Sequence record: MZ443783.1
Strand: one strand, 5' to 3'
DNA length: 64,000 bases
The notes below the pieces were generated by a model. That model was not told the origin of the DNA and searched no databases. It saw only the letters and a program-made list of their open reading frames with translations. Each line of letters begins with the position of its first letter. Position 1 is the first letter of the stretch. Of this stretch, positions 2,514 to 27,387 are shown in pieces. A program made the position numbers and the translations under genes.

Positions 2514-2879
2514 ATGGAACAAATTGAACTGTTACGCGTAGTGAAAGAGATCCTCAGCGAATACGGCAAAGTTGAGTTTCTGGCGCAAGGTCATGTTGGT
2601 GTGAACACCGAGCACCGTGCGACCTATGAAACGTTAATCACTGTGACCTCTGATATCGACACAACTTTCCCCGAAGCAGATTTCCGCGCTAAGATTGCGG
2701 CGCAGATTGACGAGTATCGTGTGGTTGGATTCAAGCGCACCTACAACGAGCAGACCCGAGAGTTTGTGCTGCAACTGACCGACCCAATATTCACCTACCG
2801 TGACCCATTGGTGTGTCCAGCAAACGGCAAAACTCTGTACTCGGTTTCCGTAGGTTTCCCGTTCGTGTCCACCAATTAA
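2514..2879 (+). CDS. hypothetical protein (121 aa)
   Basis: GAGG RBS, tight operon packing. Confidence 0.75.
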   Translation: MEQIELLRVVKEILSEYGKVEFLAQGHVGVNTEHRATYETLITVTSDIDTTFPEADFRAKIAAQIDEYRVVGFKRTYNEQTREFVLQLTDPIFTYRDPLVCPANGKTLYSVSVGFPFVSTN

Positions 2880-2888
2880 TCTGTAAAT
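2878..2888 (+). promoter_or_regulatory. AATCTGTAAAT motif, candidate phage-sigma promoter
   Basis: Identical 11-mer also at 7418-7428(-), 14311-14321 and 20553-20563; about 38 nt before ATG 2926. Confidence 0.55.
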
Positions 2889-2925
2889 ATCCTTACTTGG
2901 TTAACGCGCGTGTGGGATATTGAAA

Positions 2926-3609
2926 ATGGCGAAGTTGAAGAAAGAACGATCGGTCAAAGTCAGTGCTAAAAAGACTGTTGCCGTAAAAACAAAGAAAGCA
3001 AAAGCTAAGGCTATTCCTGTTCGTGTCGTTCAGGACACACGGCCTATTATCAATTGCCCTGAGATGGAAGAGAAGCCTCAACCATTTCGTTTTCGTGGTC
3101 AGTGCCCGATAGTGACCTGTCAGTATTGCACACGCGAAACTCCGACAGGCTGCATGGCGCTTGACCGCAAAGAATCGGCCGACCGTTCAATCTCTAACAA
3201 GGAGATCGCTTATTATAAACGTGGCCTCTTTCCTGAACTTAAAGACATGGATCAGAAGCAACTGGACAGTACGATTCGACGCGCACAAAATCGTACCCGC
3301 AATGCTATCTGCCTTACTATGTTTATTGCCGGGATTGATGATTCTGATTGCGATAGGTCTTTTCAATATGTAGAAGGCCGCAGTCGTCTGGTCGATCAGG
3401 TACATAACTATCTGGTCCAAACGTTCAATGATTACCGTCCGTGGATGCTCGCATACCTCGACGACGAAAAACGATTCGGCGACATGGTGGGTAAAATAAC
3501 CAATTCCGACTTTAATTTAAAAGACGCATTGCGTTTGACTCCTCGCAAGTATCAAATGTTCTGCCAGTCGCTACAAAATCTTAAACAATCTGGAGACTCT
3601 CATGAGTAA
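2926..3609 (+). CDS. hypothetical protein with basic N-terminus and Cys cluster (CPIVTCQYC...C)
   Basis: ORF track 2920-3609; first ATG at 2926. Confidence 0.75.
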   Translation: MAKLKKERSVKVSAKKTVAVKTKKAKAKAIPVRVVQDTRPIINCPEMEEKPQPFRFRGQCPIVTCQYCTRETPTGCMALDRKESADRSISNKEIAYYKRGLFPELKDMDQKQLDSTIRRAQNRTRNAICLTMFIAGIDDSDCDRSFQYVEGRSRLVDQVHNYLVQTFNDYRPWMLAYLDDEKRFGDMVGKITNSDFNLKDALRLTPRKYQMFCQSLQNLKQSGDSHE

Positions 3610-5374
3610 CTTTATCTCCCTCGATCAGTATCGCGCGATCATTCGTCGCAACGTCCTGAAAGAGCCTCAGATGCTGGTGGTCAATCAGACGCAGCCACTG
3701 GGTCAAATCTTTTTCCAATGCCCCGGCGATAACTTCCAGATGAAGGATATCATTGTCCCGCCATCTCGTAACGCTATCGACCTGACGCAGCAAGCACCGC
3801 TGGAAAATCTGCTGGCCTGTAGCCAACTGAAAGCGCTGCTGCAAACGCAACGTCTGGTGTTGTTGAACCCAGAAGAAATGCCAAACCCCGGTGAAGGCAT
3901 TCAGATGCCTCAGCTTTCTGTTCCACCAGTTGCTGGTGCCGTGTCGGTTGACGGCGTAACTATTCCTAACGCTACCGTGATTGTCGAGCAAAATGGTAAC
4001 GTCTGGACTGGTACTTCAAACGGCAGCGGTGTGTTCACTGTTGACGTATCTGGCCTGCAGGAAGGTGTGTTCTCAATCACCATTACTGCTGATGGTTTCG
4101 TGCCTGCTCGTTACAACTTCAATGCTGGTGCGCAACCTCTGCAACCAATGCCTGCTCCTACAGTACACGCTGTCTTTAAAGAGACAACTGTATCGGGAAC
4201 CACGGTTGCGAATGCTAATATCATCGTATCGGTGCAGAGCAAAGAGTTTACAGGTCAGGCTGATGATCAGGGTGCGTTTAGCATTAACGTTGACCCACTG
4301 CCGTTTGACATTATTCACCTGACGATCACTGCTGCTGGTTATCTGGATAACGTTGTCAATCACATGGTTGACTCTGTTCCTGGTCTGGCTCAGATTAACA
4401 GCGCACCGTTCCTGTCTACTGCGCTGGCAGGTAAGGCAAGTCCAGAAGCTGAAATCGAAATCATCATCACCGGCCAGTCCAATCAGTTCGTTACTGCTGC
4501 TGCAAACGGCGACTGGACTGCTGTTGTTGGTGCTGTTAAAGGTGAAGTCTCTATTCGTGTGCTTGAGAAAGACGGCTACGACGAAGCGACTGCTACCATG
4601 CAGCCTACCAAACTGCCTGCTCCTGTACTGGCTGTCGATAACGCTGATAGCATCGGCGAGAATCAAACTGTCTTCGGTGGACCTATCACTGGTCTGAGTG
4701 CAGAAGCGAATGACGTAGCGGTAACGCTGACTGTTCAGGCTGGTCTGTACGAAGGTACTGTTGACCTGCAATCAAGCCACTGGTCTGTGACTGGTGTTGA
4801 TGCAAAAGCGGGTGTGGGTTCTGTAGGTGTTGTGAATCTGACGTCGGCCTTCTATGAAGATGCCTCAACGTCGTTCAACATTCTGGAAGAGTTCGCGCAG
4901 CCTACTCTGCAACAAGCGCAAGATGGGCAGACTGCGGTAGTTGGTGATACTGTGGCTAGCGCTACAGTTAAGATCACAATGAACGGCGAAACCAAAACTG
5001 CGTCTTCAAACCCGCAGGGTGCGTTCTCTGTTGATGGATTTACTAACGTTGTGCCTGGCCAGATTCGTATCGAACTGTCACGCAACGGTTACCTGCCTGC
5101 GGACTTCAATGTCGCTCTGGCAGTGCAGGCTCTCGGCCAGCTTGATGCAAATCTGGCTGTCGGTGAAGACACAGTTGCTGGACAAGCGACTCCTGGTTCT
5201 ACTGTCACCTTGACGCAGGGTAGCGTTGTTGGTGATGCTGTGGCTGACGCGTCAACGGGTGACTTCATCATCACTCTGTCTGGACCGCTGGTAGAAGGTA
5301 CACCAGTAGAGTTGAAAGTACAACACGCGGGCTATGTTGATTACGTTGAAACGTTAACTGTTTCTGCACCTTAA
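3602..5374 (+). CDS. Ig-like repeat protein (590 aa), putative virion surface/decoration protein
   Basis: Repeated ~80-aa beta-rich units (V.G.A...A.I.V....T..A...G.F.I) typical of bacterial Ig-like domains; N-terminal domain paralogous to 5427-6080. Confidence 0.75.
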   Translation: MSNFISLDQYRAIIRRNVLKEPQMLVVNQTQPLGQIFFQCPGDNFQMKDIIVPPSRNAIDLTQQAPLENLLACSQLKALLQTQRLVLLNPEEMPNPGEGIQMPQLSVPPVAGAVSVDGVTIPNATVIVEQNGNVWTGTSNGSGVFTVDVSGLQEGVFSITITADGFVPARYNFNAGAQPLQPMPAPTVHAVFKETTVSGTTVANANIIVSVQSKEFTGQADDQGAFSINVDPLPFDIIHLTITAAGYLDNVVNHMVDSVPGLAQINSAPFLSTALAGKASPEAEIEIIITGQSNQFVTAAANGDWTAVVGAVKGEVSIRVLEKDGYDEATATMQPTKLPAPVLAVDNADSIGENQTVFGGPITGLSAEANDVAVTLTVQAGLYEGTVDLQSSHWSVTGVDAKAGVGSVGVVNLTSAFYEDASTSFNILEEFAQPTLQQAQDGQTAVVGDTVASATVKITMNGETKTASSNPQGAFSVDGFTNVVPGQIRIELSRNGYLPADFNVALAVQALGQLDANLAVGEDTVAGQATPGSTVTLTQGSVVGDAVADASTGDFIITLSGPLVEGTPVELKVQHAGYVDYVETLTVSAP

Positions 5375-5383
5375 TCTTACCTG

Positions 5384-5400
5384 AGGGGCTTCGGCCCCTT
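5384..5400 (+). terminator. stem-loop with C(UUCG)G loop, probable terminator
   Basis: AGGGG-CTTCGG-CCCCT immediately after the stop; weak U tract. Confidence 0.55.
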
Positions 5401-5426
5401 AATGAAATGCAATTCGGAGATTTACC

Positions 5427-6080
5427 ATGTCAGATAAAGCAAGCACCAAAGTACAACCCATTACGCTCACCACTTACAACGAGCGTTACGGCCAGAACCC
5501 TGTCGCACCTATGTACGTTGCTAACCGTACCGAGCCTCGCGGCAACGTAATGTTCAGCGCACAGGACGACATGGGACAGCCTGTTCCAGTTCTCGTACCT
5601 GCTACCTTCATCCCGATCGACCTGACTCAGCAAGCTACCAAAGAGAGCCTGTTGAAATCTACGCACCTGCGCCGCGCACTGCAACGAAACCAGCTGGTCA
5701 TCATCGACACTGAAAGCGCTGAAAACTATCTGCGTACCAGTTCTCTGGCTAAAGCGGAAATGCGTAACCTGAACAAAATGGGTAGCGCAATCGCTGCTGA
5801 TCTGGGCGAAGAAGGCGGTGAGCTGGCTGCTATCGATCTGGGCGGCGCGTCTAAACGTAACGTGCAGTTTGAAGGCGGTACTCAGTATTCTGAAAACCAG
5901 TTTGTTAACGCATTCATCGTTCGTGCTGCCGAAGACAGCGAAGAATCTGACGACAACCTGCAACGTGAATTCCTGTCTCGCGGTATCAACCTGCCAGTCT
6001 CTGAGCTGAACATTCTGCGTGAGCACATCACTCGCCCAGCAATCGTTGAGCTGATCATGCAGGCTCTGGAAGACGCGTAA
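5427..6080 (+). CDS. hypothetical protein (217 aa), paralog of the Ig-protein N-domain; putative virion protein
   Basis: GGAG RBS; shares VP...IDLTQQA..E.LL...L motif with 3602-5374. Confidence 0.8.
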   Translation: MSDKASTKVQPITLTTYNERYGQNPVAPMYVANRTEPRGNVMFSAQDDMGQPVPVLVPATFIPIDLTQQATKESLLKSTHLRRALQRNQLVIIDTESAENYLRTSSLAKAEMRNLNKMGSAIAADLGEEGGELAAIDLGGASKRNVQFEGGTQYSENQFVNAFIVRAAEDSEESDDNLQREFLSRGINLPVSELNILREHITRPAIVELIMQALEDA

Positions 6081-6096
6081 TTTTAGTGCTACAGAC

Positions 6097-6137
6097 AAAA
6101 AAAAATGGGAGGCCCCGAAAGGAGTCTCCCATTTTTG
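6097..6137. terminator. bidirectional intrinsic terminator
   Basis: A9-TGGGAGGCCCC-GAAA-GGAGTCTCCCA-T5 between convergent genes. Confidence 0.85.
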
Positions 6138-6317
6138 TTACTGCTGCTTTTCCGCTTGCTGTCTTAAACGATCAAGGAATGCCGAACTTTCACCTGGCTT
6201 AATGTGTCTCGGTTCAACTTTGATGCGATTGATCATACGCTGCATACGACGAATGCTTCGGCTACGCAGGTCTTCAATCGAGTGCTGCTTAAACTGCTTT
6301 CTGAATTTCAGAGCCAT
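6138..6317 (-). CDS. small basic protein (59 aa)
   Basis: MALKFRKQFKQHSIEDLRSRSIRRMQRMINRIKV...; starts 1 nt after the primase stop and ends at the terminator; below the ORF-track cutoff. Confidence 0.65.
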   Translation of the reverse strand: MALKFRKQFKQHSIEDLRSRSIRRMQRMINRIKVEPRHIKPGESSAFLDRLRQQAEKQQ

Positions 6318-6318
6318 C

Positions 6319-7377
6319 TTACTTTCCTTTCTGTGTTATCGCTTTAGGTCTATTCCAGCCTAACGCTTTTGCTGGCATGATACACTTCTTACCGTGTATG
6401 TCTTTCAGCGTCATGCGAACTTCTTTGATCAAGTTCATCGGTGCATTGTCTGGGTCGAGCTTAATCAGCTTACCATCTTCATCATACTCACGCGGTAGCT
6501 TGAAGTGTTTGACAGGTACTGGAGAGTTCTTTTCAAACTCCGCCTTTATTTTATTGCGCAGTAGCTTCCCGCCACCATCGTTATCAGTCATCGTGTAGAC
6601 AACACTCACGCCTAACATCTCAAGCGTTCTGCGTTTCGTTTCCCCGAACTGCTCTGCACCGAGTACAGCCAACGCAGGAATCCCATATGACAACAACGCC
6701 AGAGCATCACGAGGACCTTCGACGAGAACAACATAGCGCAACTTGTATTTCTTCAAACACTCTTTAACTAACGGCAGAGGGAACAGGCCTTTCTCTTTCG
6801 CCCAATCACCATTCGAGTTCACATAGCTTGTGCCGTTCATCTGTTTGCGCAGATACGCAGCGATACCACCTATGTATTTCGTACCGTGCTTACATGGAAA
6901 GAAGCAGACGTTACTGCCTGTACGTTGCGCGTTAAGCAAACCCCCAGCAGCCTGAACGAGCGCTCCTGGATATCCACGCCATTCAACATCGAGAGGCCAT
7001 TCCATGTAGCTGTTACGTCCGAGTGCTTTCATCAATAAACCGACAGAAGCATACGTGCCAATCTTATTGCCTATCTGCTCATACGTTTTGAACAACGCAC
7101 TTAGGCTGTTTGTGTTAGCGTCTTTCAGCGCCCAGCCTTTGATCTCTTGCAGCTTCGCGTGTGCTGCTAACTTGTTCCAGCCACCCTTCTCACCGCAACC
7201 GAAGCAGTGAAAGAATCCTAAAGGAATCTCCATCCCAACAGAAGTGTAAATACCACAACTAGGCGTCTTATCACTATGAAACGGACAGCACACCATAACA
7301 GTGTCACCGTTATATTTCTTGTCGCCTGGCAATTTGCCAATCTCGTCAAGTATTATCTGATGAACGTCTTCTGCCAT
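6319..7377 (-). CDS. dnaG: DNA primase (DnaG-type)
   Basis: CHC2 zinc finger CPFHSDKTPSC...HCFGCG plus TOPRIM LVEGPRDA...DNDGGG. Confidence 0.92.
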   Translation of the reverse strand: MAEDVHQIILDEIGKLPGDKKYNGDTVMVCCPFHSDKTPSCGIYTSVGMEIPLGFFHCFGCGEKGGWNKLAAHAKLQEIKGWALKDANTNSLSALFKTYEQIGNKIGTYASVGLLMKALGRNSYMEWPLDVEWRGYPGALVQAAGGLLNAQRTGSNVCFFPCKHGTKYIGGIAAYLRKQMNGTSYVNSNGDWAKEKGLFPLPLVKECLKKYKLRYVVLVEGPRDALALLSYGIPALAVLGAEQFGETKRRTLEMLGVSVVYTMTDNDGGGKLLRNKIKAEFEKNSPVPVKHFKLPREYDEDGKLIKLDPDNAPMNLIKEVRMTLKDIHGKKCIMPAKALGWNRPKAITQKGK

Positions 7378-7417
7378 ACCATCCTCTATTCGTATCGTAA
7401 TTTCAGCATATACGCAT

Positions 7418-7428
7418 ATTTACAGATT
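7418..7428 (-). promoter_or_regulatory. AATCTGTAAAT motif upstream of primase
   Basis: Reverse complement of ATTTACAGATT, about 41 nt before the primase ATG. Confidence 0.55.
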
Positions 7429-7441
7429 AAGGACAGCCAGA

Positions 7442-7777
7442 ATGGGTAATCCACATCGCTATGTGCATACGGCACAGCGCCGCTTCTATGGCAAACACTG
7501 GGTTAGCTTTTGTGATCTGATTCGTGTTGAACCGCAAAAGTACGGCGCATTCAATAGTCAGGATGATATGATCGGTCTGACGCTGCCGAAAGATTTTGAT
7601 GTGGCCGAGGCAACAAAGAGCCTGCGCCAGATTTATGTGACGACTGACGAGAACGTAGAAGTACGCTGCTACCTGTTTGGTACTCGCTACTATAAGTTCG
7701 TATTCTTCGAGCAAACAATTGCCGTGAGCGAGGACACTGATGAGAACGTTAGCAAATATACCCGCCCGAGTGAATGA
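7442..7777 (+). CDS. hypothetical protein (111 aa)
   Basis: AAGGA RBS; divergent from primase. Confidence 0.7.
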   Translation: MGNPHRYVHTAQRRFYGKHWVSFCDLIRVEPQKYGAFNSQDDMIGLTLPKDFDVAEATKSLRQIYVTTDENVEVRCYLFGTRYYKFVFFEQTIAVSEDTDENVSKYTRPSE

Positions 7778-8825
7778 TACTCGCGGCCTGTCTCGCATCG
7801 GAAAAATGATTGATGCGGCTCTTGACGTAAAGAACCAAGAGAAGCGTTGGCCGAAGAAGCGCGTCAGTCCGTCCATGTTTCCTATCTGCCCGATTCAAGA
7901 AACAGCGAAACTGATTTACCAGAAGCACAATAACTGCATGACCGGAGAGTCTGGTACGTTGCTGAACATCTTTGCGAAAGCAGGGACAGGGATGCACGAA
8001 TCATTGCAGAATGCTCTGGGACACAGTGGTCAGATGGTTGGTCACTGGAAATGTACGAATGAAAAATGCGTCGAGTACCCGAAAACCAAAGGCAAGACAG
8101 TCGATGGTGAGTACGTCAAAGGCAAATACACGCGAACTCGAAGCACGAACAATCGTTGTCCGTCGTGCGATCAGCCTATGGCTTATGCAGAACTCAAAGT
8201 CCTGTACAAGTCACTCAAGGGTTACGTCGATGGACTGATTGATAATCTGGACGGCACGTACAGTCTGATAGATTTGAAATCGACTATGGTGACCAAAGCT
8301 GCTGACGGAACCTTCTTCGTTAAGTATCACCGCTTCCAGATCGCGACCTACGCATACCTGCTGAAAAAGCGTTACGGCTATAACATCGTGGACTATACCC
8401 TCGTCTACGTGCCACGCGACAACCCGAAGAAGTTTGTCGAGAAGACCTTTGTGTTTGACGAGGCAGAGTCGAAACGCGCCAAAGACTTTATGATGGAACA
8501 AATACGCGCATGGGATGCTGCGGTAAAATCGGCTCGCACTGGCGACCTGCTGCCTGCTATTAAACGGAAGCCGTGCAAAAGCGCCGAGTATTATTGGGAC
8601 GAGTTCCATGGATATGATACATGCCCTTTTGTTGACTATTGCTTTATTCAATCACACATGATTGACTTCATGAAGAAGTTAGAGCAGCGAATCATGGCCA
8701 ACCCCGATCTTACTTATATGGAAATCGTAAGCACAGGTCGGAAAACTCAACAACAAGGTCTGCTGCCGGACAAGAAGCCAAAGTCTCAACGTCCGAAGCA
8801 TATCGTAAAAACATTTGAGCTATGA
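7770..8825 (+). CDS. PD-(D/E)XK Cas4/RecB-like exonuclease
   Basis: SPS..PICP, GT..H, VDGLID, IDLKS, QIATY motifs and C-terminal C...CPFVDYC; start uncertain (7740/7770/7806). Confidence 0.8.
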   Translation: MNDTRGLSRIGKMIDAALDVKNQEKRWPKKRVSPSMFPICPIQETAKLIYQKHNNCMTGESGTLLNIFAKAGTGMHESLQNALGHSGQMVGHWKCTNEKCVEYPKTKGKTVDGEYVKGKYTRTRSTNNRCPSCDQPMAYAELKVLYKSLKGYVDGLIDNLDGTYSLIDLKSTMVTKAADGTFFVKYHRFQIATYAYLLKKRYGYNIVDYTLVYVPRDNPKKFVEKTFVFDEAESKRAKDFMMEQIRAWDAAVKSARTGDLLPAIKRKPCKSAEYYWDEFHGYDTCPFVDYCFIQSHMIDFMKKLEQRIMANPDLTYMEIVSTGRKTQQQGLLPDKKPKSQRPKHIVKTFEL

Positions 8826-9232
8826 GCATACAAAAAGATTATGAACGTTCAATGCGCCGACTTAAGGAGTCTGTCTATCGCAAAGAAAAACTCGGTTACG
8901 TTGCGCCGAGATGCGTTGATGTTGTTCTCTCAAAAGTGAGACCGCCTGAACAGGTAGCGTCGAGGAAGTATCTGGTCATGCTGATGCTATTCAGTCAGAC
9001 CTGCGAACAACTCGGTGCTACCTTGACGATGCGTGAACAACTCGTGGTCAAGATGGCTATCCTTAGTCGGAAGCACCCAACGCCAGACATTCAGCGCAAA
9101 ATTCGCAGACTGGATGAACTGGTAATAAGTCAGGACAAAAACATTGAGGGTCAGCTTCTGTTGCTTGAGTATCGAGCGCAGATTCTGATTGATATCCTCG
9201 ACGGTAAAGAACCCAACTCCAGATATACTTGA
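8822..9232 (+). CDS. hypothetical protein (136 aa)
   Basis: ATGA overlap with the upstream gene. Confidence 0.7.
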   Translation: MSIQKDYERSMRRLKESVYRKEKLGYVAPRCVDVVLSKVRPPEQVASRKYLVMLMLFSQTCEQLGATLTMREQLVVKMAILSRKHPTPDIQRKIRRLDELVISQDKNIEGQLLLLEYRAQILIDILDGKEPNSRYT

Positions 9233-9239
9233 GGTACTC

Positions 9240-9719
9240 ATGGAAATTTATGTAAGCCTGAGTCAGGATAGCACGGACAAGAACCGTAGCAAAGTCACAA
9301 GCCCAGAATCCACCACTGGTCGTGTTGACGTGTCCGAATATGCTTCGCTTGAAAAGAAGCTGCGCCTGACCGAAGAGGCGAAAGACAAAGAGAAGTTAGC
9401 TCAAAAGGCTGGTGGCGGTGATTCTGTAAAGGGTAAGAAAGGCGCTAAAAAAGATAGCGCAAAGCCCAAGGATGACGACACTGATACGGACGAAGACCCT
9501 ACATTAGATGATGAAGGTGACGCAGATGATTCAGATGACGCTTCCGATACAGATGGAGACGACTCCGATGGAGACTCTAAAGGTAAGAAGTCACGAAAGA
9601 AACCTGACGACTCTGGAGCAGCGGACGATGCGGACGCAGAAGACCCTGACGCAGACGAATCCGAAGGTGATGACGGGGATGCAGATGCTGAAAGCACTGA
9701 TGACGAGGACATCGAATAG
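9240..9719 (+). CDS. low-complexity D/K-rich protein (159 aa)
   Basis: GAGG RBS before ATG 9240; acidic tail with Lys patches. Confidence 0.75.
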   Translation: MEIYVSLSQDSTDKNRSKVTSPESTTGRVDVSEYASLEKKLRLTEEAKDKEKLAQKAGGGDSVKGKKGAKKDSAKPKDDDTDTDEDPTLDDEGDADDSDDASDTDGDDSDGDSKGKKSRKKPDDSGAADDADAEDPDADESEGDDGDADAESTDDEDIE

Positions 9720-10215
9720 CGATCCCGTCGATGTGCCGAAGACGCATGATGCAATGATCGAAGTGCTGATTGCTATTCGGTACATGTGCACCAAGCGCAT
9801 GATCTTCCCTGTCGTGATTGCTAACATTGAACGGCGTAATGATTATCTGGTGATGAACAAACTCACCTTTAGCATGAAGCCTGGTAAATTCCTGACTGCT
9901 ATTCAGGATAGCAACTGCCCTGTAAACGTGTGCTGGCTCATGCGAGCCTTCACACGCACCGCTCTGCATTTCGGTCTGATGCCTGTGATTGCAGACAGAA
10001 GTGGCGACTTTCAACCTTTAGTTAGTCGCTACTTCACGCAGGACGATCCAGATTTTGCTTACCGTCGTCATTACGACATTCGTTACATGAGCCAGCTCAC
10101 TGATATCCGTAAGCCGCGCCTGTATCTGCTTAATGGAGTTAATTATGGCGTACAAGTCACTCGCCAAGAAACCGAAGAAGTCGAAAGCCGCCAAAGAGGC
10201 AGAGACTCGGAATAA
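9700..10215 (+). CDS. hypothetical protein
   Basis: Part of ORF 9508-10215; start estimated at 9700 (uncertain). Confidence 0.6.
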   Translation: MTRTSNSDPVDVPKTHDAMIEVLIAIRYMCTKRMIFPVVIANIERRNDYLVMNKLTFSMKPGKFLTAIQDSNCPVNVCWLMRAFTRTALHFGLMPVIADRSGDFQPLVSRYFTQDDPDFAYRRHYDIRYMSQLTDIRKPRLYLLNGVNYGVQVTRQETEEVESRQRGRDSE

Positions 10216-10801
10216 GGCACACAAGCAAGCGCGTCGTGGTAAACTTGCTCAGGCAGTGAAAACAATCAGCACTGCCCTCAAGAAATCTCGACGCATGACG
10301 AAAGGTGAGAAACGTGCAATTCAGTTGCAGCCGTTCAAACCCCAAGTCGTACCGCAGCCGCCTAAAACTCCGCTCATGGAGAAAGGTCTTTCGTTGAACG
10401 CGCTGATTAAGTCTACGCCGCGTCTGATGAAAGAGAACGCTATGGAATGTTATGTCAATGGCGTGAAGCGCGGCAAGACGAACAAAGGCCTGCCGATGAT
10501 TATGGCAAACGTTCGTCACAAAGATCCACTGCGTCCTAATAAAACAGTGCGCATTCACAAGCCGATGATCATCGGTCTGGATGATCCGTACAAGCCTATT
10601 TCAAAACAAAAGCGTGTGCTGGTCAGTTGTCCCTGCGAGAACTTTGTGTTCATGTGGGAGTATGCGAACACCGAACATGGTTGTGCGCGAATTATTTACG
10701 GTAACGGCGAGCCACCAGACTTCACTAACCCCGGTCACGCACCTGGTCTGTGTAAGCACCTGATGGCCTTAGCTGATCAAGTCAAACGAAACGGAGATTA
10801 A
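10145..10801 (+). CDS. SWIM zinc-finger protein with basic N-terminus
   Basis: VSCPCENF...GLCKHL (CxC-xn-CxH); GGAG RBS before ATG 10145. Confidence 0.75.
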   Translation: MAYKSLAKKPKKSKAAKEAETRNKAHKQARRGKLAQAVKTISTALKKSRRMTKGEKRAIQLQPFKPQVVPQPPKTPLMEKGLSLNALIKSTPRLMKENAMECYVNGVKRGKTNKGLPMIMANVRHKDPLRPNKTVRIHKPMIIGLDDPYKPISKQKRVLVSCPCENFVFMWEYANTEHGCARIIYGNGEPPDFTNPGHAPGLCKHLMALADQVKRNGD

Positions 10802-10806
10802 TCCGA

Positions 10807-11088
10807 ATGTTCTTTAACAATCCGGCACCAGGCGTTATCCCTAACTATCCGATTGTGCATTCAATCAATGAGATGCACCGTCGTGTGGCTGAACTCAACG
10901 GCGAACTGATCGCTGCTGGCTGCACTGTCGTAGAGTCGTGCGGCGAGATGCTGATCGAGGTCCCTAAGGGCGCATCTGCGAAAGTTGACGATATCATCCA
11001 ACGTCATCAGGATATGTTCAAAGGTCCTGTCCTCAGCCGCCCTGGTCGCTTGCAGATTGGAGGCGAAGATGCAGAAGCAGAAGTTTAA
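10807..11088 (+). CDS. hypothetical protein (93 aa)
   Basis: ORF in operon. Confidence 0.65.
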   Translation: MFFNNPAPGVIPNYPIVHSINEMHRRVAELNGELIAAGCTVVESCGEMLIEVPKGASAKVDDIIQRHQDMFKGPVLSRPGRLQIGGEDAEAEV

Positions 11089-11500
11089 CCCAGCGATCAA
11101 TAGCGTGTCGCTTCACTACGGACCGCTCATTGTTCACGGCCATGCGCAAGATAGCGCATTGAATAACGTTGTGCACCGCACGTTGCTGAACGAACTCAAT
11201 CGCACCTGCGAAGATATGTTCAACAAGATGGCATGTGTCCCTGCTGCCGCTCCGACTTTTGAGTGTGAAGTCACTGACGGTAACACCATTCTCCAATCGC
11301 TCAAACAGTGGCAGGCAGTCATCGAAGGGCAGGCGCCTGCGAAAGAGTTTGAACCGTGCTCTATTCCAGACTGGATGCGTCCGAGTCTTTTGGCTAAGGG
11401 CATGACTGACGCGGAGATCGATAGCATCCTTATCACTGGTATCGAACCTTCGTGGGATGAAACGCCTGGCGTTGTCTTCCGTACGGTGACCATTCCTTAA
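11069..11500 (+). CDS. hypothetical protein
   Basis: GGAGG RBS before ATG 11069. Confidence 0.7.
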   Translation: MQKQKFNPAINSVSLHYGPLIVHGHAQDSALNNVVHRTLLNELNRTCEDMFNKMACVPAAAPTFECEVTDGNTILQSLKQWQAVIEGQAPAKEFEPCSIPDWMRPSLLAKGMTDAEIDSILITGIEPSWDETPGVVFRTVTIP

Positions 11501-11715
11501 TGGCCTGTTCGGGTTGTGGCCGTCGTAGCTCTCGCATTAGTTACAACGGCAGTTCTGCTCCTCAGACAGTAATCGAAGAGGACGATACGTTAAGCGCTGC
11601 GCGTTTAACACCTCATGGCTGGGTACGCACCTGCGTTAAGTGTGGTGCCGTTTCCGAGCCTTCACCCTTTGCAGAAAACATTGAAAAACCTTGTGACTGC
11701 AAAACAGACGAGTGA
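11500..11715 (+). CDS. small Cys-rich protein (71 aa)
   Basis: MACSGCG...CVKCG...CDC; TAATG coupling. Confidence 0.7.
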   Translation: MACSGCGRRSSRISYNGSSAPQTVIEEDDTLSAARLTPHGWVRTCVKCGAVSEPSPFAENIEKPCDCKTDE

Positions 11716-12938: not shown

Positions 12939-13468
12939 CAGATCAAGTAATCACATTCGAAGACCAGCAAAGCTGGGAAGACTTCGGTGAAGCTGTTCAC
13001 AATGAGTTTTTGCTGAACACGATGACAGGTAGCAGTAGCGCCAGTCAGATCCCGAGTGTTGGTCCTAACGAAGGCGTGAAACATGCGCTGACCTATGCCA
13101 ACATTCTTCGTGGTGAGCAGTCGCCTATCGTTGTGCTCGATTTGCTGATCGAAGAAGTTGCTTTGGCTGAGGGCGAGACTAGTCCTTTCGATGCTGATGG
13201 TCTTGAGCAGGCCGTGCGTAAAGTAGTGGCGTTGTATCAAGCGCGAGCGCGTGACCTCGACTGTCATATCACTGGTCAGTACCTGACAGATGATAACAAG
13301 GTCATCGGCGCATTGCTGCGTGTGTATCGCAATCAGGACTTCCCGTGTACTGGGCATCCTGAAATGCTGCACGGTAAACCAATCGGTATGTTCCACTGCG
13401 ATAAGTGTCATGAGATGCAAGTCGCTGGTACGTTCCATCTTCCCAAAGAGGAAACTCAAAATGGTTAA
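12935..13468 (+). CDS. hypothetical protein (177 aa)
   Basis: ATGA coupling; C-terminal CDKC. Confidence 0.8.
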   Translation: MTDQVITFEDQQSWEDFGEAVHNEFLLNTMTGSSSASQIPSVGPNEGVKHALTYANILRGEQSPIVVLDLLIEEVALAEGETSPFDADGLEQAVRKVVALYQARARDLDCHITGQYLTDDNKVIGALLRVYRNQDFPCTGHPEMLHGKPIGMFHCDKCHEMQVAGTFHLPKEETQNG

Positions 13469-13928: not shown

Positions 13929-13933
13929 ATCCT

Positions 13934-13959
13934 AGCGGTGGCCATGTGCTGCCGCTTTT
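13934..13959 (+). terminator. intrinsic terminator
   Basis: AGCGGTGGC-CATGT-GCTGCCGCT-TTT. Confidence 0.65.
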
Positions 13960-13979
13960 GTCGTTCTGGAGATATTTCT

Positions 13980-14309: not shown

Positions 14310-14310
14310 G

Positions 14311-16701: not shown

Positions 16702-16711
16702 TTCGCAACAC

Positions 16712-16740
16712 GGGGTAGCTTAGGCTGCCCCTTCTTTTCT
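16712..16740 (+). terminator. intrinsic terminator
   Basis: GGGGTAGC-TTAG-GCTGCCCC-TTCTTTT. Confidence 0.8.
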
Positions 16741-16759
16741 CAATCTGGACTATCCCACA

Positions 16760-19291
16760 ATGGCGAAAACGAACAACAAGGCTGAGAAGAAGGCCGAGAA
16801 GAAAGCTAAAGTCAAAGCTCTGAAAAGCGGAGAAAAGGCAGTAGCTTCTGATGATATCGGCGGCGTTGAAATTCAAGGCTTCGACCTCGCAAGTTTGATG
16901 GACGATGTGCTTGACGGCATCGAAAAGAAAACGAAAGTAAGTTCGCAGGATGCAGCGCGACACGCACCGCGTATCTCAACAGGCTGTCTGGCGCTTGACA
17001 TGTATTTGTCTGGCGGTATCGTACCTGGCGGTTGGTACACATTCAGCGGCGGTGAGCAGTCATGTAAGTCAACAATGACCATGAGCATTATGGCGAGCCT
17101 GATTCGTCTGAAATACTCTGGCATTAGCGTAGTGTTCGACTACGAAGGTTCAACCGATGCCGAGTACGTTGCTGGTCAGTTGAAAACGTTCGGCGTTAAG
17201 GTCGACCCGAAAACTATCTTCGGTGTGCGTGACGATAAAGACGGTAGCTGGATCGTTAAGCCTAAGATCCGTTACTACGCACCAGACAACGGTGAGCGCT
17301 TCTTCGATTATATGTCGATGCTGCGTCGTCGTCTGCCTGACAAAATCGTTGAGAAAGACGGCACCGCGTATTACATCTTTGAGAACAACAAAGAGAACGC
17401 GAAGAAGCTGGCAGGCAAGTACGATAAGAAATGGTTCAGCCGTAACAACCAGTTCAAAGTACCTGCGCCAGACGGCCACATGCAGGCGATGGTTATCGTT
17501 GACTCCTATCCTGCGATGATGCCAGATCAGGTCGATGACGATGACGGCTCGAAAGCAATGGCGTTGCAAGCGCGTATGTTCTCTGACGGCATCAAACGTT
17601 TCCGTGGTGGTATGCGTCGTAAGATGATGACCATCGTGGGCGTTAACCAGTTGCGTCAGAAGCCTGCTGTGATGTTCGGTAGCCCTGAGTACGAGCCTGG
17701 TGGTGACGCGTTGAAGTTCTACTGCTTCGACCGTGACACTCTGATTCGTACTGACCACGGCGTATTGACTGCACCGCAGATTAAAGCGCTGATGGACGAA
17801 GGCAAAGAAGTTGCCGTTGAGTCGTTCGATGGTTATCAGAAAATCAACGGCGCATGGCTTGTCAATGACGCTCCGTTCCCGTTCGAACTGAATGCTGGTG
17901 GTCATGTGTATGTTGGCTCGGCCGAACATCGCCAGTTCACGTTCATGCACGATCTGACTGCCGAAGGTACTCCAGTTCTGCGTCCTGAATGGAACACGCT
18001 GAATCAACTGGCGCAGTACCCAGAGCAGAAAGGTCAGTACGCTGGTCTGCGTGTACCACCAGTTAAGGAACTGAAAGAGAATGTTCCTGACGCCTTCGAT
18101 GAAGCCTCACAACTGGTAAGCAATCTGCTTGGAAACTGCGACCCTGTTAGCAAGCAACTGCCGCTGGTGACTCACGGTGATACCACCTACGCTGCAAACT
18201 GTCTGTTCATCGACACTGTGGGCGAAGACACCGACACTGGTTCGTTCTCGTTCTGGGTAGAGAAGTTACTGGCCATCGGCGTATTTGCTTACGCTGACGA
18301 AAGCGGTATCTGGATTCCAGGTCTGAACAAACACGAACTGGAAGCGGCTGTAGCGCAGGACGAACTCGGTGCGTTTGCTGGTATCAGTTTTGAAGCGACC
18401 TGTCGTCAACGTCAGACTCAAATGCTGACCGTGATTGTCGATCACTTCCCTGAGCTGGTACGTTACGTTCTGGACTATCAGTTGCAGACGGGCAAAGACA
18501 AAATCTATCTGGCGCCTGAGAACGACTTCGCACAAGCGCTTGACCTGATTCTGCACAAAGAGATCGCTGGTTACGACGACTACTATGACCTGCTGATGTT
18601 CCAGCTGGCGTATGTCGATGACTGGTACAACTTCGATTCCTCAATTCTGCCTGTGCCGTTTACGCTTCGTGCGCTCAACGAACAGCGTGAGTTCTGGGAC
18701 GTGAACGTTGAAGAAACGTCGGTAGTAATCACCAACGGCTTCGTCAGTCACAACAGCGACGTGCGTGTGCGACTGGCTTCTCGTGCGGTACCAGAAGGCT
18801 GGCCGAAACTGAAAGATGCTCCTGGCATCGTCGGTGAGAAGTCGGTAACAGTTGAAGGAGGTACTGACCGCTATCGCTTCATCGCTGCTAAGACCATCAA
18901 GAACAAGATGGGCGGCATCCCTAACCAGCAGACGTGGTTACGTTTGTGGGAAGCTGACGGTAACGGTGAAGCTCGCGGTTTCGACCCAGTGTTCGATACG
19001 TGGCACTACCTGAAAACTCTGGGTCTGGTCAATGGTAGCCGTAAGTCGTTCAAGCTGAAAGCTCCGTGCCCGCTCGCATCTGATGTTAAGATGGATTGGG
19101 ATGACTTCCGTACACTCATCAACGGCAGCAAAGAACAAGTTGTTGGCGTGTGTAAGAAACTGAAAGTCAAACCTGCGGGCCTGCGTCTGTGGTGCTTCAA
19201 GTTCGTTCAGTCCACTAAGGGCAACGAAATGTTGAAGAACGCAATCAGTAAGTCTGCCAAGAAGTCTGATGACGACGACGGCGACGAGTAA
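16760..19291 (+). CDS. recA: RecA/UvsX recombinase precursor containing an intein
   Basis: ISTG..ALD..L.GG, Walker A variant GGEQSCKST, IVDS, LQARMFS, NQLRQK..VMFGSPE..PGG.ALKFY, KNK. Confidence 0.92.
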   Translation: MAKTNNKAEKKAEKKAKVKALKSGEKAVASDDIGGVEIQGFDLASLMDDVLDGIEKKTKVSSQDAARHAPRISTGCLALDMYLSGGIVPGGWYTFSGGEQSCKSTMTMSIMASLIRLKYSGISVVFDYEGSTDAEYVAGQLKTFGVKVDPKTIFGVRDDKDGSWIVKPKIRYYAPDNGERFFDYMSMLRRRLPDKIVEKDGTAYYIFENNKENAKKLAGKYDKKWFSRNNQFKVPAPDGHMQAMVIVDSYPAMMPDQVDDDDGSKAMALQARMFSDGIKRFRGGMRRKMMTIVGVNQLRQKPAVMFGSPEYEPGGDALKFYCFDRDTLIRTDHGVLTAPQIKALMDEGKEVAVESFDGYQKINGAWLVNDAPFPFELNAGGHVYVGSAEHRQFTFMHDLTAEGTPVLRPEWNTLNQLAQYPEQKGQYAGLRVPPVKELKENVPDAFDEASQLVSNLLGNCDPVSKQLPLVTHGDTTYAANCLFIDTVGEDTDTGSFSFWVEKLLAIGVFAYADESGIWIPGLNKHELEAAVAQDELGAFAGISFEATCRQRQTQMLTVIVDHFPELVRYVLDYQLQTGKDKIYLAPENDFAQALDLILHKEIAGYDDYYDLLMFQLAYVDDWYNFDSSILPVPFTLRALNEQREFWDVNVEETSVVITNGFVSHNSDVRVRLASRAVPEGWPKLKDAPGIVGEKSVTVEGGTDRYRFIAAKTIKNKMGGIPNQQTWLRLWEADGNGEARGFDPVFDTWHYLKTLGLVNGSRKSFKLKAPCPLASDVKMDWDDFRTLINGSKEQVVGVCKKLKVKPAGLRLWCFKFVQSTKGNEMLKNAISKSAKKSDDDDGDE
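17723..18754 (+). mobile_element. intein (344 aa) in RecA
   Basis: Starts CFDRDTLI after ALKFY, has a block-B-like GSAEHRQF, ends GFVSHN followed by Ser; excision restores ALKFY-SDVRVRL. Confidence 0.92.
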
Positions 19292-19297
19292 TAAATA

Positions 19298-19323
19298 GGC
19301 GGGCTTCGGCTCGCCCTTTCTTT
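19298..19323 (+). terminator. intrinsic terminator
   Basis: GGCGGGC-TTCG-GCTCGCC-CTTTCTTT. Confidence 0.8.
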
Positions 19324-19333
19324 GGAGAAAGAA

Positions 19334-19762
19334 ATGCGCACTCAAATCTATACGGCTGATATCGTCAATCTGGAAACAGTGGTCGTTGACGAAGAAGGTC
19401 AAGAGACACGCAGTCCGACAATCGTTCCTAATCTCGAAGGCGAACGTGATCTGACTGTTAGCACTCTCGGTACTATCATGGCTACCGTGACCGCTGAACC
19501 AAATCCTGACGCTCGCATGATCGTTCTGGTGTCACGCGCTCTGTTCCCTGCTTTCGCAGACCCTGAAGGTGACCTGTTCGATATCTTCGATCCGATCGAA
19601 CGTGTTGCTGATGTTGTTGCTGGAAACGTCGGCAGCATTCTCGGTATGCAGGTAGTAATCAACGATAAGTCCGACGACAACGTTCTGGCTATCGCTGATG
19701 TTCTTGATACCGAAGCTGGCGTTACTATTCGCACCTTCGGCGCTGCGCTCGTTCGCGCGTAA
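19334..19762 (+). CDS. hypothetical protein
   Basis: GGAG RBS before ATG 19334. Confidence 0.75.
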   Translation: MRTQIYTADIVNLETVVVDEEGQETRSPTIVPNLEGERDLTVSTLGTIMATVTAEPNPDARMIVLVSRALFPAFADPEGDLFDIFDPIERVADVVAGNVGSILGMQVVINDKSDDNVLAIADVLDTEAGVTIRTFGAALVRA

Positions 19763-19768
19763 GTAAAC

Positions 19769-19796
19769 TTGTGCGGGATAATGCTTTCCCGCACAA
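19769..19796. other. perfect 10-bp stem-loop
   Basis: TTGTGCGGGA-TAATGCTT-TCCCGCACAA, no U tract. Confidence 0.7.
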
Positions 19797-19803
19797 TCCC
19801 TCT

Positions 19804-19856
19804 CTCGATAGGCAATACGCCACGAGAAAACAAACCACTCGATAGGCAATACGCCA
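19804..19856 (+). repeat. 19-bp direct repeat x2 (CTCGATAGGCAATACGCCA), period 34
   Basis: Copies at 19804-19822 and 19838-19856; each can fold; the second abuts the SD. Confidence 0.9.
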
Positions 19857-19866
19857 GGAGTAATGT

Positions 19867-20568
19867 ATGAAAAAGATTCAACACGTAACACTTCCGACCG
19901 ATGCACTCAACGGACTCATTCATGGCTATTACCACCATAGCAAAACCACTGATGAATTTTGCAGATCGTTGATCTATATTGACGTTACCGACCGCAGCGC
20001 CTCAGATGCGCTGTATGCTATATTGAAACGTGAGCCGACAAAAGGCATTGTCCCTATGGGATATGATTGCTTACGAGAAGCACGTGGGCACACTGCTCCA
20101 GCACAACTCGCAATCGTATTGTCCAACAACCTGTTGCATATAGATAATACGAAGATGGCTGGAGGCGTACAGGCCATCTTTAACGCTCTGGCCAGAACCA
20201 CGCACACCAACGATACTCAAATAACTGTGTACGGCGAGCCTGGAGTAAGTAAGATTCTCAACATAATGCGCGACATTCAATATAAAGAATATATTAACGC
20301 GCCTGAATCCGACATTGTGCTTGGCGACTTTAACCTTGAGTCGAACATGACTATAGACCATTTCGTTCACATGGCTATCGATCCTAAGTTCGAAGAAGCT
20401 ATCCGCAATTCTCCTGCCACAGAATTTAAACTGGGCAGCAGTTTCATGTTCATGCACCCAGATGAATTGACTAAGGTTGTACGCATGGTCCGCCGTTGCA
20501 GTAAAATCTGCATCATGCACCCTGACATTCATCGCTATTACTTTGAGAACGTAATCTGTAAATACTAA
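19867..20568 (+). CDS. hypothetical protein (233 aa)
   Basis: AGGAG RBS; probable paralog of 21718-22485. Confidence 0.75.
   Translation: MKKIQHVTLPTDALNGLIHGYYHHSKTTDEFCRSLIYIDVTDRSASDALYAILKREPTKGIVPMGYDCLREARGHTAPAQLAIVLSNNLLHIDNTKMAGGVQAIFNALARTTHTNDTQITVYGEPGVSKILNIMRDIQYKEYINAPESDIVLGDFNLESNMTIDHFVHMAIDPKFEEAIRNSPATEFKLGSSFMFMHPDELTKVVRMVRRCSKICIMHPDIHRYYFENVICKY
20553..20563 (+). promoter_or_regulatory. AATCTGTAAAT motif
   Basis: Exact motif at the 3' end of 19867-20568. Confidence 0.5.
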
Positions 20569-20616
20569 TCACCAAACCGAACACATTGCTGTGTGTAGTC
20601 TAGCCCGACTTGGGCA

Positions 20617-20647
20617 GGGGAGAGCCGGATGGCCTCCCCATTTTTTT
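20617..20647 (+). terminator. intrinsic terminator
   Basis: GGGGAGAGCC-GGAT-GGCCTCCCC-A-T7. Confidence 0.85.
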
Positions 20648-20670
20648 ATCTACACGCTGCGGAGAACAGT

Positions 20671-21672
20671 ATGTCTAAAACGAAGTCAACTCCACAGACC
20701 TTCCTCGACCTATTCTTAAAGGATGTTAAGCTCTTTCTGCCAAGGTTCGACAAAGGACTGGACGCGTACTTATTGAAGTGCAAAGGCAAGCCGGGTCCTT
20801 ATGGCGTATCGCTTCATCAATACATGAAGTGGCTAAATCCTGTAGCGCGACTTCCTGCCAACGCAAGCGAAGTGTCTATCATCACATCAGGCTACCTGCA
20901 TTACTTTTGGCAACTCGCTAAACCTAACTTTGTGTTGGAGCCTGTGCTTGTCAATCATTTGGTTGAGTCTGTGTTGCCTGACGAACTCCCGGCTGAGATT
21001 CTTCAACGTCTGCCTTACTGGAGTCAGTGGATTACGTTGCCTCTGCATCTGGTAAGCAAAGACAATATTCTGGATCTGGACTTCGATGGTGCTTTCGTTG
21101 GGTATACATCAATCGACAACAGACCTGCGCTTGTCCTTGCGGCACCGTTTGTTTCCAACAATCAAAACATGCGCTCGAACGACTTCACACCGTTCGTTAC
21201 ATCGCATGTATTTCTTGATGCTCCTGTACGTCCAGAGTTTTTGGTAAGGAACAGCCACATACTCAACGTTGATGCAGACGCAATGAGCAAAGAAGCATAC
21301 ACCGTATTGATAATGAACATTCACCACTTCCTGGTGAAAGTGATCAACTGTGTCATGTATATCTGCTCGCAACAGGAAGCACTGTATCAGGAAGGTCATT
21401 CTCAACCTAAGCCGCAGCGTCTAGGTAAGAGCTATCGCATCACGCCACCGAAAGATGATCGCATGATCACGGTGGGCGCCGAGATGACCAAGATACTCAA
21501 AGACTTCGAAGCAGAAGTCGAATCGTGTGCTCGCGCTTTCAATGGGCGTAAGCCGCATATACGAAAAGCGCACTACCACCACTTCTGGACAGGACCGAAA
21601 GTAGGAGTTCGTACCCTTGTCTGTAAGTGGTTGCCACCAAGTATTGTTCGCGGCACCATCGTAGAGCAATAA
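20671..21672 (+). CDS. hypothetical protein with C-terminal PHIRKAHYHHFW motif
   Basis: GGAG RBS before ATG 20671. Confidence 0.8.
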   Translation: MSKTKSTPQTFLDLFLKDVKLFLPRFDKGLDAYLLKCKGKPGPYGVSLHQYMKWLNPVARLPANASEVSIITSGYLHYFWQLAKPNFVLEPVLVNHLVESVLPDELPAEILQRLPYWSQWITLPLHLVSKDNILDLDFDGAFVGYTSIDNRPALVLAAPFVSNNQNMRSNDFTPFVTSHVFLDAPVRPEFLVRNSHILNVDADAMSKEAYTVLIMNIHHFLVKVINCVMYICSQQEALYQEGHSQPKPQRLGKSYRITPPKDDRMITVGAEMTKILKDFEAEVESCARAFNGRKPHIRKAHYHHFWTGPKVGVRTLVCKWLPPSIVRGTIVEQ

Positions 21673-22485: not shown

Positions 22486-22558
22486 GATTATTCTTAGCCT
22501 GCTCTCTAATTTCAATATGTTGGCAAGTAGTGCTGACATATCGTTATTGGAGAATAAC

Positions 22559-22868: not shown

Positions 22869-22917
22869 ATGCTAATTTTTAACGTCATTACACACCAACC
22901 GACTTCGGGGTATCACT

Positions 22918-24670: not shown

Positions 24671-24723
24671 GCACATAATAGGATGAAATCGCCATGTACG
24701 CGCCCGTGCGCCCGTGATACAAT
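24671..24723 (+). promoter_or_regulatory. early promoter cassette 1
   Basis: GCACATAATAGGATGAAATCG, 26 nt, then TACAAT with TG extension. Confidence 0.8.
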
Positions 24724-26659: not shown

Positions 26660-26675
26660 CTATTTGGAGAATGCT

Positions 26676-26936
26676 ATGCACCACTATACGCGTGAAGAAC
26701 TGGAAGAAATGAACTGCATCGAACTGGACCAGCTTGCAAACGAGCGCGGTCTGCTGGAAGATAAAGACGATGACGACGATCTGGACAATGACCTGCTCAT
26801 CGGCATGATTCTTGACGACCAGAACGATACTCGCGTTGCTGACGAGATGGAAGAAGATCGTCAGCAACATTATCGTCGCCTCGATGAAGAACAGCAGGCG
26901 CGTGAGGGCAAAGACGGTTCAGACGACTATTGCTGA
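26676..26936 (+). CDS. very acidic small protein with a Rho-N/HeH-like module (86 aa)
   Basis: ELEEMNCIELDQLANERGL...NDLLIGMILDDQ; GGAG RBS. Confidence 0.75.
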   Translation: MHHYTREELEEMNCIELDQLANERGLLEDKDDDDDLDNDLLIGMILDDQNDTRVADEMEEDRQQHYRRLDEEQQAREGKDGSDDYC

Positions 26937-26993
26937 TTAAGTAAACCAAGAGGCTGCCAGCGCTGGTGGCCTCACTCACAAGAAGGAGCAATA

Positions 26994-27341
26994 ATGAAGC
27001 GCAAAGTAATATTGATAGACACGGCAGAGTTTCACAACCAACCCATCTCGTTTCCATCGATCATTGATTTTGACGGCATAGACACGGTGGTGTTTGTTGT
27101 GAAGTCAAATGGTGAGCACGGAGGCATTGATTATCTTGGTGCGTACTGTGCAACACAAATGACAGTTGGCTATACGAAAGTGCCTATGGCGCAGACGTTG
27201 AATATCGACGAATATGGCGTTGTGCCACTCGAAGATGATATGAAGGCCAAGCTACTTCACACCAACCAGTACGTTGACGAAGTGCCTGAGCAACATCAAA
27301 GCATCTACAGCGCGAAGACTGAAATCCTCTTCGCAGAGTAA
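26994..27341 (+). CDS. hypothetical protein (115 aa)
   Basis: AGGAG RBS. Confidence 0.75.
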   Translation: MKRKVILIDTAEFHNQPISFPSIIDFDGIDTVVFVVKSNGEHGGIDYLGAYCATQMTVGYTKVPMAQTLNIDEYGVVPLEDDMKAKLLHTNQYVDEVPEQHQSIYSAKTEILFAE

Positions 27342-27345
27342 CCAC

Positions 27346-27374
27346 AAGGGCTGCCATTATTGGTGGCCCTTTTT
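27346..27374 (+). terminator. intrinsic terminator
   Basis: AAGGGCTGCCA-TTAT-TGGTGGCCCTT-TTT. Confidence 0.8.
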
Positions 27375-27376
27375 CA

Positions 27377-27387
27377 TTTCTGTAAAT
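27377..27387 (+). promoter_or_regulatory. TTTCTGTAAAT motif
   Basis: Directly after a terminator, about 32 nt before ATG 27419. Confidence 0.5.

Follow-up and report, generated by a model that had tools for sequence, protein, structure and literature searches.

The late promoters of bacteriophage T4, TATAAATA, are read by gp55 together with gp33 and the gp45 clamp. To our knowledge, most jumbo phages have no RNA polymerase of their own, and the timing of their gene expression is largely unstudied. The GenBank record of Pseudomonas phage Lu11 (JQ768459.1) carries 16-nucleotide (nt) features, AAAACTGTAAATAC, labelled 'putative middle/late promoter', and labels sigma70-like sites early promoters. 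The paper on phage PaBG named a 'Lupandier group' and reported an RpoD-like sigma factor and a possible second sigma, gene 112 (PMC7412058), and according to Iyer et al. such phages encode two types of sigma factors (PMC7824862). The element considered here is a short box that recurs in Erwinia phage pEa_SNUABM_28 (MZ443783.1, 267,143 bp, Alexandravirus), in particular in a stretch of 64,000 nt, bases 186001-250000 of that record, hereafter the window; positions are those of the window unless given as record positions. Its repeated word, AATCTGTAAATA, is a genuine motif. Judged from its sequence, the box (M1, consensus aAATCTGTAAATA) would be the -10-type core of a phage middle promoter class, with a probability that we put at about 0.8, and it appears to be one of three promoter classes, the middle one between an early class and a late class, M2. 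No paper naming the M1 box was found in the literature, nor were transcript data for any member of the group; Alexandravirus records annotate no such promoter, and the box is a prediction both here and in Lu11.

The whole genome was reassembled from six pieces of the GenBank record identical to the window. Genes were called with a simple codon-usage caller, which gave 322 genes versus 346 annotated and whose errors mislabel some coding and non-coding positions, making the calls adequate for statistics and inexact in detail. The GenBank annotation of the window genes reads 'hypothetical protein' throughout; some gene names were taken from the near-identical RefSeq record of pEa_SNUABM_16. Words were counted blind in 134 upstream regions, each oriented by its downstream gene, and the leaders on the sense strand, TCTGTAAA, TGTAAATA and ATCTGTAA, aligned to give the M1 consensus. 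M1 was then represented by a 13-nt matrix trained on pEa_SNUABM_28 itself, with 15 bits as the cut-off for a strong match and with expected numbers taken from Markov-simulated genomes; the exact word CTGTAAATA, set against its reversed control word, served as an independent check on this self-trained matrix.

Taken by itself, the bare word CTGTAAAY shows only slight enrichment in the window: 9 copies were counted against 3.8 expected, and 3 of 100 shuffles also reach 9. Its copies include those at positions 2881, 7418 on the minus strand, 14314, 15395, 20556, 27380 and 39688. The matrix separates far better: matches of at least 15 bits number 9 in the window against 0.57 expected and 43 in the genome against 2.4, and 26 reach at least 18 bits where 0.37 would be expected. 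The exact word CTGTAAATA has 29 copies genome-wide and its reversed control none. All 43 strong matches lie in the sense of their genes (p 2e-13). Enrichment in intergenic over coding DNA across the genome, which the sequence-only reading had put forward as a check, is pronounced, since 24 of the 43 (56%) are non-coding where 8% would be expected (p 1e-15). A start codon follows within 10-70 nt in 26 of the 43, compared with 7.8% of random sense positions, at a median distance of 36 nt. The genes behind M1 genome-wide include those for the primase, the sigma factor, SSB, the NAD ligase, a part of the polymerase, the clamp loader, a 1055-aa protein and a TV-Pol-like enzyme, among others. The sequence-only reading had linked a CTGTAAAY box with genes of replication and recombination and with the sigma gene itself, which it was said to precede, and this is borne out across the genome, and also in eight relatives.

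The fine structure of the box resembles that of a -10 element with some departures from the sigma70 form. In the seed set the TA of its hexamer TAAATA (T at -12, A at -11) is invariant, as is the G of M1, and the TG touches the hexamer directly. Position -7, where the sigma70 -10 element has T, is A in 84% of the sites. With TAAATA set at -12 to -7, 22 of 25 non-coding sites (88%) have a purine at the predicted +1; transcription would then start at a purine 6-7 nt past the box, about 25-30 nt before the start codon. That no -35 element accompanies the box had been noticed from the letters of the window, and it holds: there is no -35 hexamer 16-18 nt upstream of M1, and no column upstream of -19 exceeds 0.3 bits.

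Every strong copy that had been named in the window is present. The box that precedes the sigma gene, GAATCTGTAAATA (14310-14322, plus strand, 21.0 bits), lies 32 nt before it and is retained in phages Yoloswag and JA29 despite diverged flanks. The next gene, for SSB (15442-16701), has AAAACTGTAAACA 38 nt before it (15391-15403, plus, 18.6 bits), and a box of the M1 type precedes its orthologue in Yoloswag, JA29, Lu11, PaBG, GR7B, PhiXhv-12, Peetri and HRDY3, being an annotated promoter in Lu11. The primase gene (6319-7377, minus strand), identified by its Pfam Zn_ribbon_DnaG and Toprim domains, has TAATCTGTAAATA 39 nt before it (7417-7429, minus, 20.6 bits), retained in Yoloswag, JA29, Lu11, PhiXhv-12 and Peetri. 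Because the divergent intergenic region that holds this box (7378-7441) is 64 nt long, transcription of the primase gene must begin within it. The same sequence, TAATCTGTAAATA, with the same score of 20.6 bits, stands at 2877-2889 (plus), 36 nt before gene 2926-3609, with CTGTAAAT at the orthologous place in Yoloswag and JA29. The box ATTTCTGTAAATA (27376-27388, plus, 17.1 bits) lies 30 nt before gene 27419-27790; it had been described as following directly on a terminator, and a strong terminator stem (27346-27371) does end 5 nt before it, leaving therefore no space for another promoter.

A further copy of TAATCTGTAAATA (20552-20564, plus, 20.6 bits) overlaps the end of gene 19867-20568 and lies upstream of gene 20671-21672. 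Behind it comes an 80-nt leader (20572-20652) that forms three hairpins (-31.1 kcal/mol, z -3.5); the last of them, with seven U in a row, is an intrinsic terminator and lies ahead of gene 20671-21672. The leader (20552-20652, counted from the box) might act as a small RNA or as an attenuator; Yoloswag has not retained this arrangement of leader and terminator. A weaker M1-like sequence, GAGTCTGTAAAGA (44811-44823, plus, 15.7 bits), lies where gene 44577-44828 ends, with gene 44901-45410 starting 77 nt further on, and confirms the copy of GTCTGTAAAG reported there. Copies within genes, likewise reported, are found at 9420, 39684 and 63719. Two weaker copies did not hold up: the one placed before RuvC at about 1913, where CCCCTAGTAAATA near 1912 scores -14.8 bits, and the one at 55532, near which the maximum score is not above -6.5.

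M1 is found in relatives at the same places. In Yoloswag and JA29, whose sigma factors are 75% and 71% identical to that of pEa_SNUABM_28, it occurs at the orthologous positions before the sigma, SSB and primase genes and gene 2926, the flanks having diverged. The word CTGTAAATA has 33 copies in Lu11, 29 in Yoloswag and 19 in JA29, against 2, 5 and 3 for the reversed control. An exact-word count found no copy of CTGTAAATA in PaBG; there, counting de novo in upstream regions returned an M1 variant, aaGTGTAAAC (GTGTAAAC), alongside TAATTTAC, and the same procedure in Lu11 returned AACTGTAAATA alongside gTAATTTAA. In HRDY3, the Xanthomonas phage PhiXhv-12, the Vibrio phage GR7B and the Pseudomonas phage Peetri, whose sigma factors are only 24-40% identical to that of pEa_SNUABM_28 (gp247), CTGTAAAT occurs 31, 18, 14 and 10 times, against 7, 4, 3 and 1 for the control. 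A word of the M1 type is at or near the top of the de novo counts in upstream regions of Lu11, PaBG, GR7B, PhiXhv-12 and Peetri, and heads them in the last three. In GR7B, PhiXhv-12 and Peetri, M1 lies 28-48 nt before orthologues of the SSB, primase, clamp loader and ligase genes and of the gene for the 1055-aa protein, and in these three phages it was found before no head, sheath, portal or protease gene. Pairs of orthologues in which each member has a box agree in its class in 9 of 9 cases for Lu11 and in 7 of 8 for PaBG (p 6e-4). These comparisons suggest that the genes under M1 control are the same throughout the 'Lupandier' clade of jumbo phages, which rely on the host RNA polymerase, and also outside that clade.

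The blind count of upstream words also gave a second sense-strand word, gCTAATTTnA (M2; full box acGCTAATTTnA). CTAATTT occurs 22 times, always on the sense strand, and 17 of these copies are non-coding. M2 is mostly found in a minus-strand block at record 65-188 kb, 21-46 nt before genes for a 561-aa sheath-like protein, an ATPase, the endolysin, a PAAR/tail operon and others, and its hexamer, TAATTT, has T at -7, unlike that of M1. In the window it lies at 1882-1893 (minus), 7398-7403, 22503-22514 and 22869-22880 (all plus). It is retained as TAATTT in Lu11, PaBG, HRDY3, Yoloswag and JA29 and as CTAATTA in GR7B and Peetri; no late box is enriched in PhiXhv-12. M2 is probably a late promoter, standing before structural and lysis genes. 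The primase M1 box (minus) and the TAATTT box of gene 7442-7777 (plus) stand back to back, 13 nt apart, and this pair is retained in Yoloswag and JA29.

Upstream regions with neither M1 nor M2 yielded a third class, TGATATAAT or TGATATACT, which is an exact extended -10 signal of sigma70. Its eleven intergenic sense copies are confined to record 210-262 kb, where they precede small genes of no known function; those in the window lie at 24715-24723, 29297-29305, 35103-35111, 43520-43528, 46942-46950, 52160-52168, 56307-56315 and 60113-60121, all on the plus strand. Every copy is accompanied by a conserved distal element, cTGGAcaAAAT, which precedes the TG by about 30 nt, is too distant for a -35 element and may be an UP element or the site of a regulator. 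The sequence AACTCTGCAAATA at 29247 and 43469 (14.4 bits), just upstream of promoters of this class, is a doubtful M1 and may belong to their distal element. Promoters with both sigma70 hexamers (at least 10 of 12 matches) are absent from sense intergenic DNA genome-wide, and in 1-20000 such matches are depleted, with 9 found against 19.0 expected (standard deviation 5.1). Canonical sigma70 promoters are scarce, and the phage therefore appears to use non-canonical signals even for its early genes. The window comprises an early module of the host sigma70 type and a replication and recombination module served by M1.

The sigma gene of the window (14355-15392, plus) encodes gp247, a phage factor of the sigma70 family with regions 1.2 to 2.4 followed by about 100 aa of C-terminal sequence. 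The protein is a member of PHROG 17569 and has no Pfam match at the usual threshold: the orthologues in Lu11 and PaBG pass the cut-off for Sigma70_r2, and gp247 scores 16 bits against a cut-off of 24. The profile of its family matches RpoD over regions 1.2-2.4 (E 8e-5), with the Tyr and the Trp-Trp of the helix predicted to read the -10 element retained. Its AlphaFold2 model has a mean predicted local distance difference test score (pLDDT) of 81, and the top Foldseek matches are all sigma70; in VIA-align, residues 3-231 align with sigma70 domain 2, including the non-conserved region (Z 15.4, 222 residues aligned). gp247 is a genuine sigma70 relative, and its match is limited to regions 1.2-2.4. 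There is no Pfam match to Sigma70_r4_2, the best structural matches leave residues 237-345 unaligned to either sigma3 or sigma4, and pLDDT falls below 50 for residues 256-286. On this model the lack of a detected region 4 would fit promoters without a -35 element, and it is silent on which box is read.

The helix predicted to read the -10 element was compared with the boxes between groups of phages. It reads WWILNAQTC in the Erwinia/Dickeya group and FWTKNAM(R/K)(S/A) in Lu11 and HRDY3 (FWTKNAMRS in Lu11), so that 6 of 9 residues differ between the groups, while M1, compared over 12 nt, stays the same (p 0.12-0.15). The nucleotide preceding TAATTT goes from 43 C and 14 G in the Erwinia group to 6 C and 21 G in Lu11 and HRDY3 (p 5e-6), and the 3' flank of TAATTT changes likewise. 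GR7B and Peetri have a common D-A-K-T helix and the late variant CTAATTA in common, but their M1 differs between them.

A second sigma candidate is encoded outside the window (record 265604-266746, plus; 380 aa; PHROG 19229) and is a homologue of PaBG gene 112. Its model has a pLDDT of 83.5, and residues 145-237 match the sigma2 domains of extracytoplasmic function (ECF) sigma factors with Z up to 9.5. The best match is sigma H (Z 9.5, root-mean-square deviation 2.2 Å, 77 residues), and 9 of the top 10 rows are sigma factors; matches to full-length sigma28, sigma32 and sigma B are looser. The predicted fold is suggestive, not proof, of an ECF-like phage sigma. The family is present in Yoloswag, JA29, Lu11, HRDY3 and PaBG and faint in PhiXhv-12 and Peetri, and no relative of gp345 was detected in GR7B in the phyletic comparison of sigma factors with boxes. 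The operon of the candidate is led by M1 (record 262609) and an early-type box (record 262672), a combination also seen in Yoloswag; in PaBG the operon begins with all three classes of box. Behind the M1 at record 262609 the next gene begins 326 nt on, and this untranslated stretch could hold non-coding RNAs or small genes.

In the scheme that we favour, the host core RNA polymerase would read M1 with a phage-made specificity factor. The early class would be transcribed first, through host sigma70-type extended -10 recognition, after which the M1 class would drive the genes of DNA metabolism and the gp247 gene. gp247 made from the M1 regulon would then read the late M2 boxes, a role more probable for it than reading M1. 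As reader of M1, the second, ECF-like candidate, whose operon has an early-type promoter, is the likeliest, if at rather less than even odds; gp247 and host sigma70 with a phage cofactor are each a doubtful choice, and any other factor is a long shot. The relay through gp247 is favoured because only M1 precedes the sigma gene, the region upstream being closed by a terminator at 13934-13956, and autoregulation would lack a source of the first molecules; because the late M2 class needs a phage-specific reader, for which a sigma of the middle class is the classical solution; and because the helix varies together with M2 and not with M1. Tentatively, this may be extended to a two-sigma relay across the clade, in which neither phage sigma would need a -35: a very divergent ECF-like sigma with a 140-aa N-terminal extension would read CTGTAAATA and thereby turn on, among other genes, that of an RpoD-like sigma without region 4, which would then read CTAATTT; the clade so proposed, with the same reserve, is that of host-polymerase-dependent jumbo phages, with hosts including Erwinia, Dickeya, Pseudomonas, Xanthomonas and Vibrio.

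The strand specificity of M1 and its constant distance from start codons, 17-45 nt, could equally be those of an element acting in RNA, such as a processing site in the 5' untranslated region or a binding site for a translational regulator common to replication genes. This is very improbable: M1 is taken to be a promoter and not an RNA signal because purines are over-represented 6-7 nt downstream, as they are at start sites, because boxes at 27376 and at record 146078, 162807 and 179035 begin 0-5 nt from the T-runs of terminators, with no space for an upstream promoter, and because the primase copy lies in its 64-nt divergent region. If M1 is a promoter, the host sigma70 holoenzyme might read it, alone or remodelled by an early phage protein in the manner of AsiA and MotA in T4. 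M1 does retain T at -12, A at -11 and a TG just upstream, and the depletion of two-hexamer sigma70 promoters in 1-20000 and their absence from sense intergenic DNA would agree with such a reading. With A and not T at -7, no -35 element and a TG that abuts the hexamer, however, M1 would be a very poor sigma70 promoter by itself, and Erwinia, Pseudomonas, Xanthomonas and Vibrio all have phages with the same box; nothing resembling AsiA or MotA came to light, though no systematic search for such a protein was made. Recognition by the host holoenzyme is accordingly judged unlikely.

A somewhat stronger rival, still improbable, holds that gp247 itself recognises M1, that the M1 regulon is the sigma regulon with positive autoregulation, and that another factor reads M2. 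This is close to what the sequence-only reading proposed when it took the box for the promoter of the phage sigma factor: M1 does behave as a phage-specific -10-only box, but the assignment of gp247 as its reader was not supported, nor was autoregulation by the sigma factor (14355-15392), for no early-type or other promoter precedes the gene to supply the first molecules, M2 and a second sigma-like protein exist, and the helix changes while M1 stays constant and the late box shifts. Several observations nevertheless weigh against the scheme of a middle promoter read by the second sigma and relayed through gp247. M1 accompanies a gp247-family sigma in every genome examined, down to 24-26% identity, and a protein with a sigma2-type module only would fit a -10-only promoter; TGTAAATA is one base from the T4 late box, which is read by a sigma. 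Conservation is wide for M2 and the second sigma-like family too, however, and with both sigma families and both boxes widespread the phyletic pairing of sigma with box is not decisive. The second candidate has no Pfam match, no sequence-profile match in the PDB and no profile-profile match to the gp247 family, and in Lu11 and HRDY3 its operon is led by M2 and not by an early box. The comparison of helix with box draws on few lineages, confounded by shared ancestry, and PaBG has an Erwinia-type helix yet a mixture of C and G before TAATTT. Among strong M1 matches, 17 of 43 are intragenic with no start codon near. A search of sequencing runs brought up nothing but DNA metagenomes and a single wastewater metatranscriptome, with no RNA from infected cultures; the metatranscriptome contained 6% of the words in contig form, and contigs cannot show start sites.

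Some neighbouring features fall outside this argument. Four tandem M1 boxes lie within 750 nt outside the window, at record 255131, 255156, 255809 and 255865 (region 255131-255877). The gene for an 843-aa RecA/UvsX-like protein (16760-19291) is preceded only by a strong terminator (16712-16731) in the spacer 16702-16759; the region 19292-19333 was also noted. No box of any class was found before this gene here, nor in Yoloswag, JA29, PaBG or Lu11, and it would need read-through of the SSB transcript or an unrecognised signal. Three plus-strand spacers, 29801-29866, 30185-30249 and 30604-30668, are near-identical and stand before small genes at 29867, 30250 and 30669. Each contains a GC hairpin, then TTTGAAAATCA, then CTGAGGAG, then the start; they look like a repeated intergenic cassette between paralogous small genes.

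What emerges is a testable wiring plan, with coordinates for the classes, two candidate sigma factors and the genes of each class. pEa_SNUABM_28 is a fire-blight phage used in biocontrol cocktails. With the same boxes in relatives whose sigma factors are 24-37% identical, one set of experiments could annotate the regulation of a large clade.

Compared with described systems, M1 is closest to the features of Lu11. The 9-nt core CTGTAAATA is identical, the consensus aAATCTGTAAATA accommodates the Lu11 core (A)AACTGTAAATA(C), one annotated feature stands before the SSB orthologue beside the sigma gene, and in all 6 pairs in which the gene here has M1 and its Lu11 orthologue has any box, that box is M1. 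The Lu11 annotators, in contrast, used a single middle/late class, and the TAATTT late class is unannotated there. The extended -10 signal of sigma70 (TGnTATAAT) is fitted exactly by the early class, TGATATAAT or TGATATACT, whereas in M1 the TG touches the hexamer, the hexamer is TAAATA and position -7 is A. The T4 late promoter resembles M1 in being -10-only, with no -35 element, phage-specific, strand-specific and near the start site, and in 7 of 8 bases (TGTAAATA against TATAAATA). It differs in the genes served, as M1 precedes genes of replication and is missing from those for the major head, sheath, portal and protease, and gp247 is a long RpoD-like protein, unlike gp55. The proposed relay nonetheless has a parallel in T4, where the gene of the late sigma, gene 55, is a middle gene. 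In the Bacillus phage SPO1, too, successive classes are read in turn (by gp28, then gp33/34), with the sigma gene in the class preceding its target, comparable to the two sigma-like proteins and three promoter classes here; unlike in SPO1, the relay here is derived from gene order and motif comparison, and the second sigma is a candidate. M1 was thus already predicted in Lu11, and the type of control, with -10-only phage promoters and sigma relays, is classical; what is added here is a complete map of three classes and a testable two-sigma relay.

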